64,000 bases of DNA, taken from sequence record MT708547.1; one strand, 5' to 3'. The notes beneath the pieces are model-generated. The model searched no databases and was not told the DNA's origin. It saw nothing but the letters and a program-made list of their open reading frames with translations. The position numbers and the translations under genes are program-made. Position 1 is the first letter of the stretch; every line of letters starts with the position of its first letter. Positions 50,221 through 56,615 of the stretch are shown here, in pieces.

Positions 50221-50427
50221 ATGCATGTAAAAATTAACCCAGAAAAGAACTTTTATAATGAAGTATTCGGTTCTGAAGATTTAGTACGTCATTTTCCTGA
50301 ATTAGAAACAACTGGCGTCGAAGTTTATTATGATGGTGACTTGTATCATATCATTAAAGATGGTAAACTAGCTGGAGATTGCTGTTTCTTTGATGAAGAA
50401 GAAATGGAACATCTTACCATTCTATAA
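50221..50427 (+). CDS. Hypothetical protein
   Basis: 68-aa ORF. Confidence 0.6.
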   Translation: MHVKINPEKNFYNEVFGSEDLVRHFPELETTGVEVYYDGDLYHIIKDGKLAGDCCFFDEEEMEHLTIL

Positions 50428-50444
50428 ATAAAAAATGGAGGCGA

Positions 50445-50588
50445 CTGTATTCAGTACTGAATCAATTGATCGTTGCGTAATCAGATTCAGTTAGCGTAGT
50501 ATTAGCTGGGACGCGTACTTGTGATCCGCAACCACAACGTACTTAAAATCCAACGCGTGGAGGGTAAGCATTCTGTACTGAATAGCAG
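50445..50588 (+). ncRNA. Putative structured ncRNA with loop-loop complementarity
   Basis: Closing stem TATTCAGTAC/GTACTGAATA; loops contain GTTGCG and CGCAAC. Confidence 0.55.
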
Positions 50589-50616
50589 AAGGGCTACAAA
50601 AACTTATACTTCAAAA

Positions 50617-50794
50617 AGGTTCGGGAAGTATTCGTAATAAACCGTTTAATCGTCTTATCAGTACTATGAACAACCAATATATTTGTGGTGGATATTATTG
50701 GACTCAAGTAGATGATATTATCTTTGTACGCTTTCTAACCAAAAGGTCAGATAATAAAAATGTAAGAAAATTTCAGTACTGATAGCTGGAACCT
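50617..50794 (+). ncRNA. Putative multibranch ncRNA
   Basis: Nested stems AGGTTC/GAACCT, TATCAGTACT/AGTACTGATA, CCAATA/TATTGG, ATTATCT/AGATAAT. Confidence 0.45.
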
Positions 50795-50853
50795 TACTAT
50801 AGTAAAAAAAGACCTGATATGACTCGCTTAGGTCTTTAAATTATATAATGCGA

Positions 50854-50925
50854 GGGACGCTACGCCTTAGTTTAGGGCTAAATCGTAAGGATTGAGTACT
50901 AAACCGCCTTGAGAGTCCCAAGGCA
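50854..50925 (+). ncRNA. Putative pseudoknotted ncRNA
   Basis: GGGAC/GTCCC crossing GCCTT/AAGGC; GC-rich and intergenic. Confidence 0.45.
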
Positions 50926-51073
50926 ACTTTTAATTTAAACAAATTTGTACAAAACACAAAAAGGTGATATAATGATTCTATCTGAAGAAGATTGGGGTGT
51001 TTATCCTAAAGACGAATTTGATGGATTTTAATAAAAAATCTTGAACAAAAACAAAATAATGTGATATAATATT

Positions 51074-51205
51074 AGTACTGAATGAGGATAGGTGCAGTTG
51101 GTGAGATACCTCATGAGAAATCATAGACACCGTAGAAAGCGAAGGGCTTGGTGAGCGACGGCAATAGACAAGCATAGTAGAGGCTTGAAGAACTCATTTA
51201 GTACT
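51074..51205 (+). ncRNA. Repeated ncRNA family B, copy 1
   Basis: Closing stem AGTACTGAATGAG/CTCATTTAGTACT; shares motifs with 51804-51903; promoter at 51041-51070. Confidence 0.65.
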
Positions 51206-51309
51206 TTTTTAATTTAAAGAATTGTGCACTAGTTGTTTTAAATCAGTAAAACACCGAAGATGCAAGTACTATGTAGTATGTCAAAATCAAATACAATAAG
51301 AGTATACAT

Positions 51310-51783
51310 ATGAAAGTCGAATTGGGAAGTACTATCAAAGCAGGTTATACTGTTTCAGTTACAACGTGGGAAAATGATGGAGATAATTATCAAACAAATG
51401 ACATTGTAGGTTTATCTAAAGAAGATGCAAAAATGTTTATTGATACTTTACCCATTTTTAAATGCGTTCATAGTAAAAAGAAAGGTCTTGGAAACAAAGA
51501 ACTTAATATTAACCAGTACTTGGGTAAGTTCGAAGACCTAATCAATAACAATATTATCACAGTGTCATTTGCTGAAAAATATTTTGGTTATATTAACCCA
51601 AATAGTGATTATGATGAAGATGAACAACAAGACACGATTATTGAAGCATTGTCTGAAATTCTAGGATATCCAGTTGAATACGATTATGGTTTTATCAGAG
51701 TCTTTGAAAAAGTTCAAGTACTCTACTTCGATGAAGATACCGTAATTCCTTCAGGTTTGAAAGTAGACACCAGTACTTTATAA
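51310..51783 (+). CDS. Hypothetical protein
   Basis: 157-aa ORF. Confidence 0.65.
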   Translation: MKVELGSTIKAGYTVSVTTWENDGDNYQTNDIVGLSKEDAKMFIDTLPIFKCVHSKKKGLGNKELNINQYLGKFEDLINNNIITVSFAEKYFGYINPNSDYDEDEQQDTIIEALSEILGYPVEYDYGFIRVFEKVQVLYFDEDTVIPSGLKVDTSTL

Positions 51784-51803
51784 CATATAAAATACAGAAC
51801 AAA

Positions 51804-51903
51804 TACTGAATGAGGATAGGTCATTGTGACCGGATGAAGTGAAAGGCTTGGTGAGCGACGGCAAAACCCAACCGTAGTAGAAGCTCTAGGAACTTATTCA
51901 GTA
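51804..51903 (+). ncRNA. Repeated ncRNA family B, copy 2
   Basis: TACTGAATGAG/CTTATTCAGTA; GGCTTGGTGAGCGACGGCAA identical to copy 1. Confidence 0.65.
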
Positions 51904-51924
51904 CATTTTAATTTAAAGAATTAT

Positions 51925-52020
51925 GTGGGTGTGGCGGTATTGGTTGTACGCAAAGGTCTTAAAAACCTTCAGAGGGCTTAAAATGCATTCCTCTTGTGAG
52001 TTCGAATCTCATCACCCGTA
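51925..52020 (+). tRNA. tRNA-Leu(TAA), CCA not encoded
   Basis: AAGGT-CT-TAA-AA-ACCTT anticodon arm, long variable arm, GTGAG-TTCGAAT-CTCAT T-arm. Confidence 0.85.
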
Positions 52021-52049
52021 CTCATTAAATAGTCAATGGATTGACACAA

Positions 52050-54825: not shown

Positions 54826-55136
54826 GGCCCCTTAGCTCACGCTTTGGTTAGAGCAGACGACTCATCGATAAATGGTGACTTTCACAAGTAATTGTGATTG
54901 AAAAACTGGATGAATTCAGGGAAACCTTAACACATAATGGTGATGGCAATCCTGAGCCAAGCCCAATAAGCGTATTGGGAAGGTGCAGAGACTAGGTGGT
55001 TCAGCACGATCTTGCTGTGTAATACACCAATAGCGTCCGGCATCCTTATAGGATGATGATATAGTCCTTTCTATAATGAAAATTATAGGTAAAAAGAATC
55101 GTTTGGTACTGTGTTCGACTCACAGAGGGGCCACCA
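54826..55136 (+). tRNA. tRNA-Ile2(CAT), interrupted by a group I intron (exons 54826-54865 and 55097-55136)
   Basis: Joined exons give GGCCCCTTAGCTCA..GACGA-CT-CAT-AA-TCGTT..AGGGGCCACCA, closely resembling E. coli ileX. Confidence 0.92.
54866..55096 (+). mobile_element. Group I self-splicing intron, 231 nt, ORF-less
   Basis: AATTCAGGGAAACC (54913), GGCAATCCTGAGCCAA (54945), GAAGGTGCAGAGACTAG (54979), GATGATATAGTCC (55055); exon ends in U, intron ends in G. Confidence 0.92.
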
Positions 55137-55141
55137 CACAT

Positions 55142-55213
55142 TGTACTCTTCTCCTGTAAGGAGAATGACAAAAAGCTATCCGAAAGATAGAAAGCCTGAA
55201 ATAACAGGGTACA
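55142..55213 (+). ncRNA. Putative four-way-junction ncRNA
   Basis: TGTAC/GTACA enclosing TTCTCC/GGAGAA, CTATC/GATAG and CCTG/CAGG. Confidence 0.5.
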
Positions 55214-55223
55214 TTTAATCAAT

Positions 55224-55306
55224 TGGTAGTTGGCAGAGCGGCTTTTGCGACGGACTGTTAATCCGTGTCAGAAATGACAAGACTGGTTCGACTCCAGTAC
55301 TACCAG
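55224..55306 (+). tRNA. tRNA-Asn(GTT) with a long variable arm, CCA not encoded
   Basis: TGGTAGT/ACTACCA, ACGGA-CT-GTT-AA-TCCGT, GTCA-GAAA-TGAC arm, G73. Confidence 0.85.
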
Positions 55307-55371
55307 CATATAAAAAATGAACTTCAGAACAATAAATAATATCATAGAGGATATTATGAGGTCTGAAGTTC

Positions 55372-55917
55372 ATGGGAAGAAAGCAAACAGAAGAAACACG
55401 CAAAAAAATTTCTAATGCATTAAAAGCAAAAAATACAGTTTTACCCGAAAAAGAAATTATTGAAAAATACACAAACGGTATAGCTGTATATAAGTTAGCA
55501 AAAGAATACAAATGCCACAAAACAAGAATAAATTCTATAATTGAAGCTAGTGGTGTTAAACGACCAATCGCTACAAATAAAAATAGATTTTGTGAAATTC
55601 ATAAATGTAATTATGAAAAAAATCCACAAGGTAAGTGGAAATGTAATAAATGTGATATTCAACGTGTTTCTGATAGACGTAGAGAACTTAAATTACTTGC
55701 TGTGGAATATAAAGGTGGGTGTTGTGAAAAATGTGGATATGATAAATGCATAGCTGCGTTAGAATTTCACCATTTAGATCCAAATGAAAAAGATTTTGGA
55801 ATATCATCCAGTGGTCATACACGAAGTTTCGAAAAGTTAAAGATAGAACTTGATAAATGTATTATGGTTTGTGCTAATTGTCATCGTGAAATTCATGATG
55901 ATGAAAGAAAAGAATAA
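55372..55917 (+). mobile_element. Free-standing HNH endonuclease
   Basis: GGCCEKCGY..ALEFHHLDPNEKDF..ELDKCIMVCANCHREIH. Confidence 0.9.
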
Positions 55918-55983
55918 TGGGGTATGTATCCGAGAACACCTCATGACTTCCAACGCGTGGAGAGGTGCGGAACATCCCCGCCA
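55918..55983 (+). ncRNA. Putative CCA-ending hairpin RNA
   Basis: TGGGG(T)ATGT/ACATCCCCG-CCA; apical TCCA-ACGCG-TGGA. Confidence 0.5.
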
Positions 55984-55985
55984 TT

Positions 55986-56115
55986 TTTGGACAAATCGTA
56001 CTGAATTAGTACTGTAATAATAGACACTCATTGCTGTAAACTGGAATGCAGTATACAATCCTTCAGATACAGAGTGTGACAATACGATGTTAAAGGTATC
56101 CTTTGACTGTCCAAA
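55986..56115 (+). ncRNA. Putative multibranch ncRNA
   Basis: TTTGGACA/TGTCCAAA, ATCGTA/TACGAT, CACTC/GAGTG, GTTAAAGG/CCTTTGAC. Confidence 0.5.
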
Positions 56116-56139
56116 TTAATTTAAATGGAGTACTGAATA

Positions 56140-56340
56140 ATGTCCAAATATGTTAATCGTCAAAAACGAAAAGCACGTACTAAGGACGAAATTCTACAGT
56201 TGATACAAAAAAATCAAAAAGATGTAGTTATTGAAGAATATATTTTTCAGTACGGTAATCAACAATCAATGGTACAAGAAAGTAATGGTAAGTATCATTC
56301 TGAGCATTACGATCTCATTAAACGAATTCTTTTGAAATAA
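56140..56340 (+). CDS. Hypothetical protein
   Basis: 66 aa with GGAG RBS. Confidence 0.55.
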   Translation: MSKYVNRQKRKARTKDEILQLIQKNQKDVVIEEYIFQYGNQQSMVQESNGKYHSEHYDLIKRILLK

Positions 56341-56491
56341 ACAATAATACTCATCATCTAATATCAGTACTGATGCGTATCAGCAGGTGGCTTGATGGGC
56401 AGTACTGACAGGATACATCGTTCTCCGGTGGCGGGTTCGGTGGATATACGTAAAGTCGTATTGGGTATACCAAATATAATAATAAAAATAT

Positions 56492-56574
56492 GTAATAATG
56501 TGATAGCTCAAATAGGTAGAGCGGGAGGCCAAAGTGCTGACTGGTTTGTGAGTTCAATTCTCACCCGTTATTAC
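56492..56574 (+). ncRNA. tRNA-like RNA or tRNA pseudogene lacking a canonical anticodon arm
   Basis: D-arm TAGCTCAAATAGGTAGAGC, T-arm GTGAG-TTCAATT-CTCAC, 9-bp end stem. Confidence 0.6.
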
Positions 56575-56583
56575 TAAACTAGT

Positions 56584-56615
56584 AAGCTACCCTATGTTAT
56601 TCGGGTAGCTTTTTC
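56584..56615 (+). terminator. Terminator closing the RNA island
   Basis: AAGCTACCC..GGGTAGCTTTT. Confidence 0.75.

Follow-up and report, generated by a model that had tools for sequence, protein, structure and literature searches.

The window analysed here is a stretch of 64,000 nucleotides (nt) from Klebsiella phage Muenster (MT708547.1), a RaK2-like jumbo phage of 347 kb that belongs to the genus Alcyoneusvirus, and the subject of this study is an island of tRNA genes and structured non-tRNA RNAs at positions 50423-56615. The island is 100% identical to positions 298423-304615 of the record, window coordinates being record coordinates minus 248000. It contains six canonical tRNA genes, an intron-split tRNA-Ile2(CAU), two HNH endonuclease genes, a repeated promoter, an AU spacer and a closing terminator (Table 1), and the non-tRNA modules are distributed among them. 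The first-pass annotation of this DNA had described a structured-RNA/tRNA island, and that observation is confirmed by the anatomy, by the repeats and by comparative support for about ten families of modules. The GC enrichment noted at the same time is real and modest: the non-coding, non-tRNA DNA of the island has 33.6% GC, as opposed to 27.7% for its coding DNA and 31.5% for the whole window, with single modules ranging from 28 to 57%.

The comparative data suggest that the non-tRNA modules are mostly real structured RNAs. About ten families (13 copies, several of the families resting on three to five sequences) exhibit covariation or conservation across lineages, and at least four of them (D1, D2, E1 and F2) are common to unrelated phage families and have no Rfam entry. 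The close relatives of Muenster (KP13-7, RCIP0023, K64-1, RaK2 and phiKp_21) are 91-99% identical over the island. In the genus Asteriusvirus (121Q, PBECO4, EJP2 and others), nucleotide alignment with Alcyoneusvirus is limited to some of the RNA modules and the tRNAs, amounting to approximately 6-8% of the query. Comparison with relatives revealed conserved module structures, with compensatory pairs in D1, D2, E1, G, M1 and F2. The folding-energy z-scores of the modules range from +0.35 to -3.9, and because thermodynamics alone is insufficient, their description as closed modules rests on the comparative evidence; it holds for the ten or so families, while folding energy does not convincingly support every module for which closed folding had been claimed.

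The search against Rfam proposed with the first description was carried out. With Rfam 15, at both gathering and permissive thresholds, the only matches in the island are the tRNAs and a group I intron, and the non-tRNA modules match no family. The covariance models of GOLLD, ROOL, Y RNA, transfer-messenger RNA (tmRNA), 6S and RNase P gave no match at E <= 5 over positions 50000-57000, nor at E <= 10 over 52955-53520. The tmRNA and intron modes of ARAGORN returned nothing credible, the former yielding sub-threshold noise at -ps80 only. Literature searches, which included exact D1 core sequences but not the supplementary files of a 2023 catalogue that lists candidate structured RNAs of viruses, found no description of the island RNAs; D1 or D2 may be listed in that catalogue under a serial name.

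Among the individual families, D2 is folded by RNAalifold into seven hairpins and a closing stem of 4 bp. The covariance model R1 scores the Muenster copy at 238 bits and finds a single copy in every one of 14 phages or contigs, which represent at least six lineages; a pattern scan of IMG/VR yielded only four contigs. By BLAST, D2 is 84-93% identical in phages that otherwise do not resemble the island, namely Bragavirus-type T4-like phages (infecting Proteus, Morganella and Shigella) and T5-like Proteus phages, and more distant copies occur in an Aeromonas phage and in a Klebsiella phage of the Stephanstirmvirinae. Whether the phage is T4-like, T5-like or jumbo, D2 always lies within a gap of the tRNA cluster; it occupies most or all of that gap in SdyM_006, Pm5461 and Proteus phage 1, and in the first two it leaves no more than one or two bases free on the way from tRNA-Gly to tRNA-Asp. 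In an alignment fitted to the model, which favours structure, 93.4% of the cells are paired and 23 of the 42 pairs show compensatory changes (17 of 42 in an independent MAFFT alignment); none of 500 shuffles reached these values, and slid-register controls produced at most nine such pairs. The loop of helix 6 is complementary to a downstream tetranucleotide, and the alteration of both sides together in one lineage lends weak support to a putative pseudoknot. D2 has no Rfam match in the window (52955-53520, E <= 10). Together with D3, it is better conserved between genera than are the adjoining protein genes.

D1 starts 2 nt past tRNA-Gly, and its model, R2, scores 112 bits and detects a single copy in the window. 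BLAST matches were obtained in Vequintavirinae, Stephanstirmvirinae, T5-like and Cellulophaga phages, and a 23-nt pattern of the D1 core occurs in 61 viral contigs of IMG/VR, as opposed to only five contigs among the genomes of 185,579 bacterial and archaeal species. The consensus is composed of P1, a purine-rich joiner, P2 (GCUS with SAGU), a 4-by-4 internal loop, P3 and an optional P0, followed by a short helix that closes an 18-nt loop and then by a 3' strand rich in AGUA and GAA motifs. In the alignment fitted to the model, 95.6% of the cells are paired and compensatory changes affect 13 of 18 pairs; covariation scores 0.687 (0.205 in shuffles), and none of 500 shuffles reached either the paired fraction or the score. 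The 18-nt loop pairs with the 3' strand in a pseudoknot, the variable position of which reads G:C in 30 distinct sequences and A:U in another 12, G:U and A:C combinations being absent.

Two arrangements of the three conserved segments of D1 exist. In type A (Muenster plus 11 others) the RNA ends in P1, and P0 is either capped or absent; in type B (31 contigs) it ends in P0, and P1 is a capped hairpin. The family is therefore naturally circularly permuted. No Rfam family matched D1 in the window or in 12 other D1 loci, and the hammerhead, twister, twister-sister, pistol, hatchet and hepatitis delta virus (HDV)-like models likewise gave no match to these loci, permuted ones included, at E <= 0.1. 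D1 directly abuts tRNA ends in several phages. Two general roles were rejected: that of a cis-regulatory leader of a particular gene, because the 61 loci share no flanking protein family, and that of a tRNA-cluster element as a general rule, since only 7 of the 61 lie within 400 nt of a tRNA. In Cellulophaga phages (2953-3065 of locus L017; also loci L039, L078 and L084), D1 is flanked by the stop codon of a phosphoesterase-like gene on one side and by an intrinsic terminator on the other, which places it at the 3' end of an mRNA and away from any tRNA. In the unrelated Klebsiella phage KP13-26 (144 kb), homologues of E1 and D1 are found approximately 20 nt apart between tRNA-Leu and tRNA-Val (4909-5107 of locus L015). 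This adjacency indicates that the same cassettes recombine in different orders.

Two further modules recall tRNAs. E1 is an irregular hairpin with an unpaired terminal CCA, in which six of 18 pairs are compensatory. Its model, R3, scores 91 bits and finds one copy per phage in 10 loci, and in Erwinia phage pEp_SNUABM_01 the end of E1 coincides with the 5' start of tRNA-Arg. The E1 of KP13-7 (8012-8084 of locus L002) shares only 74% identity with positions 55918-55990 of Muenster, whereas the flanks share about 98%. Most of the differences compensate one another, as they would if one 70-nt cassette had been replaced by another allele. The pattern scan of IMG/VR found six contigs with E1 and two with M1, and both RNAs occur mostly in jumbo phages. 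F2, in turn, scores 19 bits with the tRNA model (gathering threshold, 29) and is seen by ARAGORN only at -ps80, with a four-base "anticodon" and G.A and A.G mismatches in the anticodon stem. The acceptor, D and T arms are present, the acceptor and T stems covary and the odd "anticodon" region is nearly invariant. The sub-threshold score and the stem mismatches set F2 apart from canonical tRNAs, and its arms make it tRNA-like. Of the 93 phage records that the E/F region matched, most contain a copy of approximately 82-90% identity, including those of T4-like Klebsiella, Raoultella and Yersinia phages, Gamaleyavirus and Erwinia phage Cronus, and the authors of these records label the copies inconsistently as tRNA-Cys, tRNA-Thr or tRNA-Gln, or leave them unannotated.

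The remaining families are M1, G, D3, H1, E2 and F1. M1 is present as two paralogues; in Salmonella phage 7t3 and in a jumbo contig of IMG/VR (L097), the same promoter is followed by an M1 closing stem of different sequence that is nevertheless complementary, and the inner hairpin covaries in this comparison. The linkage of M1 to tRNA-Leu is also found in 7t3. RaK2 possesses a single M1 copy (835-968 of locus L022), a hybrid of M1a and M1b, and is without the 157-aa open reading frame (ORF) and the stretch between the paralogues, as expected from recombination between them. The G family (three copies) has 17 pairs, six of them compensatory, across the paralogues and the Asteriusvirus copies. 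D3 is about 90% conserved between Alcyoneusvirus and Asteriusvirus and hardly varies, with one compensatory pair. H1 (88% identical in 121Q) shows three compensatory pairs out of 24, and E2, compared with EJP2 at 74% identity, shows seven out of 35. For F1, three of 41 pairs are compensatory with respect to EJP2, making it a weak candidate for a structured RNA. The A1-A3 region (50433-50927) is carried only by relatives that are about 97-100% identical here; A1 itself is found in relatives of about 99% identity and, as two 32-nt patches, in 121Q and EJP2.

Table 1. Features of the Muenster tRNA and structured-RNA island, in window coordinates (z, folding-energy z-score)
Feature	Position	Strand	Description
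TATAAATA motif	50423-50430	+	T4-type late-promoter consensus at left edge of island; putative promoter
A1	50433-50650	+	GC-richer non-coding candidate RNA; 41% GC; z -1.3; 38-aa GenBank coding sequence inside
A3	50841-50927	+	Candidate unit: TATATAAT -10 element, 78-nt RNA, terminator-like hairpin 50906-50924; 51% GC; z -1.7
M1a unit	51041-51205	+	Promoter 51041-51070, M1a RNA 51072-51205; 12-bp closing stem, then U-run; z -3.9
ORF, 157 aa	51310-51783	+	phrog_2290; absent from RaK2
M1b RNA	51806-51905	+	Paralogue of M1a; AU spacer 51906-51917, then tRNA-Leu(UAA)
tRNA-Leu(UAA)	51925-52021	+	ARAGORN, Rfam
HNH gene	52050-52868	+	Free-standing homing endonuclease; phrog_10822, E = 1.5e-38; absent at this place in RaK2
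tRNA-Gly(UCC)	52885-52960	+	ARAGORN, Rfam
D1	52963-53067	+	105-nt pseudoknotted RNA, type A (open at P1), of a phage-wide permuted family
G1	53072-53124	+	First G copy; 52-nt three-way junction; z -3.7
D2	53128-53316	+	190-nt RNA; eight helices (4-bp closing stem and seven hairpins), probable pseudoknot
D3/G2 unit	53333-53517	+	Promoter 53333-53361, D3 53370-53450, G2 53453-53505, AU spacer 53506-53517
ORF, 47 aa	53526-53669	+	
ORF, 149 aa	53689-54138	+	phrog_21500
tRNA-Arg unit	54204-54366	+	Promoter 54204-54231, tRNA-Arg(UCU) 54243-54316, terminal hairpin T1 54329-54353, AU spacer 54355-54366
tRNA-Ser(GCU) unit	54373-54559	+	Promoter 54373-54401, AT-rich leader, tRNA 54471-54559
tRNA-Ser(UGA) unit	54580-54781	+	Promoter 54580-54608, tRNA 54621-54708, G3 54716-54767, AU spacer 54770-54781
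tRNA(CAU) with group I intron	54826-55136	+	Predicted exons 54826-54865 and 55097-55136; intron 54866-55096 (231 nt)
H1	55137-55223	+	Three hairpins within a closing stem; z -3.2
tRNA-Asn(GUU)	55224-55307	+	84 nt with extra arm
HNH gene	55372-55917	+	Second free-standing endonuclease; phrog_2255, 5.5e-29; NUMOD3 motif
E1	55918-55985	+	Irregular hairpin of about 67 nt with unpaired terminal CCA, tRNA-minihelix-like; z -3.2
E2	55991-56115	+	125-nt structured segment, then spacer variant
ORF, 66 aa	56140-56340	+	
F1	56341-56494	+	154-nt structured segment; z -2.2
F2	56495-56572	+	tRNA-like RNA with non-canonical anticodon region; overlapped by GenBank coding sequence
Intrinsic terminator	56584-56615	+	Closes the island; 9-bp GC-rich stem and T-run; z -4.4

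The seven tRNAs reported earlier are all present. ARAGORN detects six (Leu-taa, Gly-tcc, Arg-tct, Ser-gct, Ser-tga and Asn-gtt), which score 44-70 bits with RF00005, above the gathering threshold, and the seventh, tRNA(CAU), surrounds a group I intron found through Rfam. The full-length RF00028 model matches this intron at 54840-55088 with 104.1 bits (gathering threshold, 50). The intron follows U36 of the CAU anticodon and its last base is the G at 55096, whereas the 3' exon carries an encoded CCA. When the predicted exons are joined, the resulting 80-nt RNA has a cloverleaf as its minimum free energy (MFE) fold, with an unusually large D loop, and ARAGORN recognizes it as tRNA(cat) at -ps95, slightly below its default threshold. 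Splicing of a group I intron is predicted at this position. The best match of the 5' exon is an annotated tRNA-Ile in 5425 of 5426 complete E. coli genomes (85% identity), which identifies the gene as a tRNA-Ile2-type, AUA-reading species that would be useful to a phage of 31.5% GC. In GenBank, the split gene is unannotated in both Muenster and KP13-7, and the first-pass annotation had overlooked its intron, as well as the circular permutation of D1.

Group I introns are known from the anticodon loops of bacterial tRNAs, namely tRNA-Leu(UAA) of cyanobacteria and tRNA-Ile(CAU) of Azoarcus. Like these, the Muenster intron is situated in the anticodon loop after a U, ends in G and leaves exons that join to a cloverleaf, and its host tRNA is the same species as in Azoarcus. 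Unlike the bacterial introns, it resides in a virulent jumbo phage and is polymorphic among near-identical phages. Its closest relatives in sequence are group I introns in protein-coding genes of Staphylococcus, Vibrio and Synechococcus phages. KP13-7 has the same intron, whereas RaK2 and K64-1 possess an intronless tRNA(CAU) at the equivalent place, followed by a 235-aa HNH gene (3386-3460 and 3483-4190, respectively, of locus L022 for RaK2). A simple gain or loss of the intron between Muenster and RaK2 was rejected, because the intronless tRNA(CAU) is only about 77% identical to the Muenster exons inside flanks of about 97% identity, and the whole tRNA(CAU) cassette must have been exchanged. 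From the sequences, the difference looks like a conflict between intron and endonuclease cassettes. In the case of tRNA-Asn, the Muenster gene has 84 nt and an extra arm, as in Shigella phage SdyM_006, and its counterparts in KP13-7 and RaK2 have 73-75 nt; it appears to be another swapped tRNA allele.

Both HNH genes of the first description were verified by matches to PHROGs, the Pfam HNH models remaining below threshold for the two ORFs. The presence of HNH genes differs among close relatives, as RaK2 lacks the one upstream of tRNA-Gly, and RaK2 and K64-1 carry another after tRNA(CAU). The island is a mosaic of independent cassettes with different distributions, D1 being a general phage motif and D2 a resident of tRNA-cluster gaps in several phage families, and not the single coherent undescribed system that had been suspected.

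Several signals punctuate the island. The motif TATAAATA at its left edge occurs once in the window, both strands considered, as opposed to 15.3 +/- 3.7 expected; the start motif reported at 50423 is therefore real, avoided elsewhere and probably meaningful where it stands. The closing terminator is equally well defined, consisting of a hairpin and T-run with an MFE z-score of -4.4. The recurring promoter is of the sigma-70 type (TTGAAC, 17 nt, TATAAT); most copies also have a TG extension and are preceded by an A/T tract. Five copies make up a repeat family of 56 nt, and further copies precede M1a and A3b. Matches to TTGAMM-N17-TAYAWT number nine in the window (four of them in the island), far above the 0.95 expected, in agreement with the claim that several modules have promoters of their own. 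A promoter-like TTGACA-N17-TACATA site at 54786-54814 lies ahead of tRNA(CAU). Within the TATAAT of the promoter at 50946-50973 begins a 19-codon ORF (50972-51031), which may be a leaderless mini-ORF or nothing.

The spacer TTTTAATTTAAA has 19 matches in the window with no more than one mismatch (8.15 expected), a number reached by none of 100 shuffles. Six copies are exact, and all but one of them belong to the island (50928, 51207, 51906, 54355 and 54770). Of the other sites at which a shared AT spacer had been reported, those at 53316 and 53506 have one mismatch and that at about 56115 is a looser variant. Each time the spacer is preceded by a terminal helix, and four or five copies stand where an UP element would be expected, 5-8 nt ahead of a -35 element. 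The sole exact copy outside the island (60961-61008) is located between a terminator-like hairpin and a TTGACA-N17-TATAAT promoter. Because this copy behaves alike, the spacer is regarded as general inter-unit punctuation in Muenster. RNase E prefers AU-rich single strands next to helices, and we infer that it may cleave within the spacer. At the stems followed by UUUUAAUUUAAA, a terminator consensus scan selects the A3 hairpin alone; in M1a, T1 and D2 the helix is followed by 4-6 U, and in G2 and G3 AAA separates the helix from the U-run.

For fifty years, phage tRNA clusters have been known as the source of a couple of stable RNAs. In T4 these are species 1 and 2, encoded by rnaC and rnaD. 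Like them, the non-tRNA RNAs of Muenster are encoded within a phage tRNA cluster on the strand of the tRNAs, in the vicinity of a homing endonuclease gene (segB in T4), and E1 shares its CCA end with rnaD. The T4 RNAs are expressed and their function is still unknown (PMC9697503). The repertoire in Muenster is much larger, as had been proposed: about ten families as compared with two, none of them in Rfam 15 and several with their own promoters, and D1 ranges well beyond tRNA clusters. Homology to rnaC and rnaD was rejected on the basis of three covariance models and BLAST. R1, R2 and R3 (for D2, D1 and E1) had no match in T4 positions 69000-74000, which hold both genes, and BLAST of the modules against the locus found nothing, M1, G, H1, E2 and F1 having been compared by BLAST only; a short resemblance between E1 and rnaC failed the model search. 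T4 SegB drives the preferential inheritance of the T4 tRNA region (PMC2330249), and the Muenster endonuclease genes are similarly interleaved with tRNA genes and variable among close relatives, but they are of the HNH type, in contrast to the GIY-YIG type of SegB.

GOLLD and ROOL are phage RNAs of complex fold and unknown function that are often found near tRNA islands (PMC12286853). The island RNAs differ in having no Rfam match and in size (190 nt for D2, as opposed to roughly 600-800 nt), and they come from enterobacterial virulent phages, whereas GOLLD and ROOL are known from phages and prophages. The kind of locus is known already from the T4 cluster and from GOLLD and ROOL, and the RNAs themselves lie outside those families. 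In the same jumbo clade, PA5oct expresses abundant non-coding RNAs and uses the host RNA polymerase (PMC7318152); these RNAs map to the terminal repeat and not to a tRNA island, and they are likened to those of Muenster by description only.

The anatomy of the island, the conserved structures, their distribution across lineages and the presence/absence polymorphisms were read directly from the genomes compared. The explanation that we favour, and hold to be probable, is that the island is a phage tRNA and stable-RNA expression locus built from small, separately mobile RNA cassettes. The modules lie in short promoter-driven units set apart by the repeated AU element, as the first-pass annotation had it. 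Host RNA polymerase would start at the strong sigma-70-type promoter with its A/T tract, of which there are at least seven copies, and the lone T4-type late motif may drive transcription too. Each short unit would produce one to three compact RNAs (tRNA, tRNA-like or non-tRNA structured) and would terminate in a closing helix or a G-type three-way junction followed by the AU element. This element may act as a U-tract or as a single-stranded entry site for nucleases, and as an UP element where a promoter comes next. The enzymes of tRNA maturation would then free both the tRNAs and the non-tRNA RNAs, with RNase P acting at the tRNA 5' ends and RNase E within the AU linkers, while the closing helices would stop the 3' exonucleases. 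In this way the non-tRNA RNAs would build up as stable species, like species 1 and 2 of T4, and tRNA-Ile2 would become functional only once its intron has been spliced out. The cassettes would spread between unrelated virulent phages, shuffled by the free-standing HNH endonucleases and by recombination between the repeated promoters, spacers and paralogous modules. Release by tRNA processing agrees with the fit of D2 into gaps between tRNAs, with the CCA end of E1 and its contact with a tRNA 5' end in pEp_SNUABM_01, and with the start of D1 right behind tRNA-Gly. Mobility agrees with the occurrence of D2 in otherwise dissimilar phages, with the restriction of the Asteriusvirus alignment to modules and tRNAs, with the E1 allele of KP13-7, with the exchanged tRNA(CAU) cassette and with the M1 hybrid of RaK2. 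As to function, we can only guess that the island RNAs act at the interface of tRNA and translation maintenance, with E1 and F2 as tRNA mimics, D2 as a compact RNA that binds a protein or RNA partner and D1 as a self-contained element that directs processing or defines an end.

Several points weigh against such a locus of stable RNAs. The transcription, processing and stability of the island RNAs are deduced from their sequences, and any role in trans is a guess. D1 lies within 400 nt of a tRNA in only 7 of the 61 viral contigs, and because it is mostly away from tRNAs elsewhere, its presence in the island may be incidental to tRNA function; across the 61 loci there is no common flanking protein family, and no partner or target was found. 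Most of the stem-plus-spacer sites are left uncalled by the simple terminator scan. The folding-energy z-scores are weak for D1 (+0.35), F2 (+0.35), D3 and A1, and A1, A2 and A3 are candidate RNAs that fall outside the comparative support.

Other explanations have to be weighed against the same evidence, the most conventional being that the GC-richer stretches encode small proteins. GenBank indeed annotates small "hypothetical protein" coding sequences over the modules (50521-50637 over A1, 52987-53094 over D1/G1 and 56428-56577 over F1/F2), and ORFs of 35-49 aa are present, but the substitutions in D1 and F2 are pairwise compensatory and not codon-like, the frames are not kept in the homologous RNAs of other phages and no protein family matches them. 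We find a coding origin scarcely credible, and at least the last two of these coding sequences almost certainly represent RNA rather than protein. The modules might instead be decaying remnants of tRNA genes, introns and endonuclease insertions: two loci were termed pseudo-tRNAs by the authors of the RaK2 genome (PMC3622015), endonuclease genes come and go in the region and F2 scores below the tRNA threshold. The helices of D1, D2, E1, G, M1 and F2 are, however, maintained by compensatory substitutions, and D2 and D3 are conserved between genera better than the adjacent protein genes, so that decay is very improbable and, for the families tested, largely refuted already. It is less far-fetched, though still unlikely, that the modules are purely cis-acting punctuation (terminators, RNase sites, 3'-end stabilizers and UP elements) without any function as free RNAs. 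The G modules and T1 always stand at the 3' end of a unit ahead of the spacer, a spacer copy beyond the island likewise separates a terminator-like hairpin from a promoter, and the M1a closing stem with its U-run resembles a terminator. The eight helices and near-invariant loops of D2, over 190 nt, exceed what punctuation needs, and so do the long conserved unpaired cores of D1, E1 and F2 that are kept across distant phages; moreover, the M1a unit has a promoter of its own and contains nothing else.

Another possibility concerns D1. Circular permutation, scattered occurrence and placement against tRNA ends are habits of hammerhead (types I-III) and twister (P1/P3/P5) ribozymes, and D1 displays them all: types A and B are natural permutations, a highly conserved core is held by a covarying pseudoknot, copies are scattered independently of context in many phages and nearly absent from cellular genomes, and some directly adjoin tRNA ends, as do HDV-like ribozymes beside phage tRNAs. 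D1 could represent an undescribed class of small self-cleaving ribozyme that cuts in cis beside tRNA-Gly and, elsewhere, between genes, and it would then be a processing device and not a stable RNA that acts in trans. We regard this as somewhat unlikely, since none of the Rfam 15 ribozyme families matches D1, its nested P1/P2/P3 topology differs from the HDV fold, a cleavage site cannot be named from the sequence alone, permutation is typical of such ribozymes without defining them, and a fold that binds a protein or a ligand would give the same picture. An anti-defence decoy arsenal, as suggested in the first-pass annotation, in which the non-tRNA RNAs would imitate tRNAs or act as sponges and so tie up host defence nucleases that target tRNAs or sense RNA, would suit the CCA-tailed minihelix E1 and the tRNA-like F2, with its strongly conserved non-canonical anticodon region and its presence in many phage lineages; the tRNA-like features of these two are the only hints from the modules themselves. 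The PARIS defence system is reported to be neutralized by a phage-encoded tRNA (PMC11464382), and a CCA-adding enzyme, a polynucleotide kinase and an RNA ligase are among the gene products of RaK2-type phages (PMC3622015). Yet no module is linked to any defence system, D1 and D2 lack a tRNA-like shape and D1 copies are mostly far from tRNAs, which leaves the decoy explanation improbable. A broader form, in which D1 is a new catalytic or ligand-binding class, D2 a complex-fold RNA with a dedicated partner and the island an exchanged trans-acting toolkit that includes E1 and F2 as mimics, is likewise doubtful; if true, it would mean that phages exchange RNAs that manipulate host tRNA processing or tRNA-directed immunity.

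Considered as an expression locus of mobile RNA cassettes, the Muenster island would make the stable-RNA phenomenon of phage tRNA clusters much broader, with about ten conserved families in 6 kb. The covariation in D1 and D2 is of the kind that earlier preceded the finding of ribozymes, riboswitches and ribonucleoprotein components, and natural circular permutation like that of D1 is elsewhere characteristic of self-cleaving ribozymes. In current phage annotation, these RNAs are covered by protein ORFs and the intron-split tRNA is overlooked. With defined families and models, the role of phage stable RNAs becomes approachable.

One further sequence feature concerns the window as a whole. The palindrome AGTACT is its most over-represented palindromic hexamer, with 150 copies (21 expected, a 7-fold excess; e.g., at 515, 2052, 3148 and 60328), and CAGTACTG is found in 34 copies across the window, as opposed to 0.43 expected. 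Because the palindrome is over-represented genome-wide, the "cagtactg" module ends were rejected as a feature of the island. It occurs within genes in all three phases (60/12/44) as well as between them, is often lengthened to TTCAGTACTGAA and, judged by this distribution, looks like a genome-wide binding or modification site.

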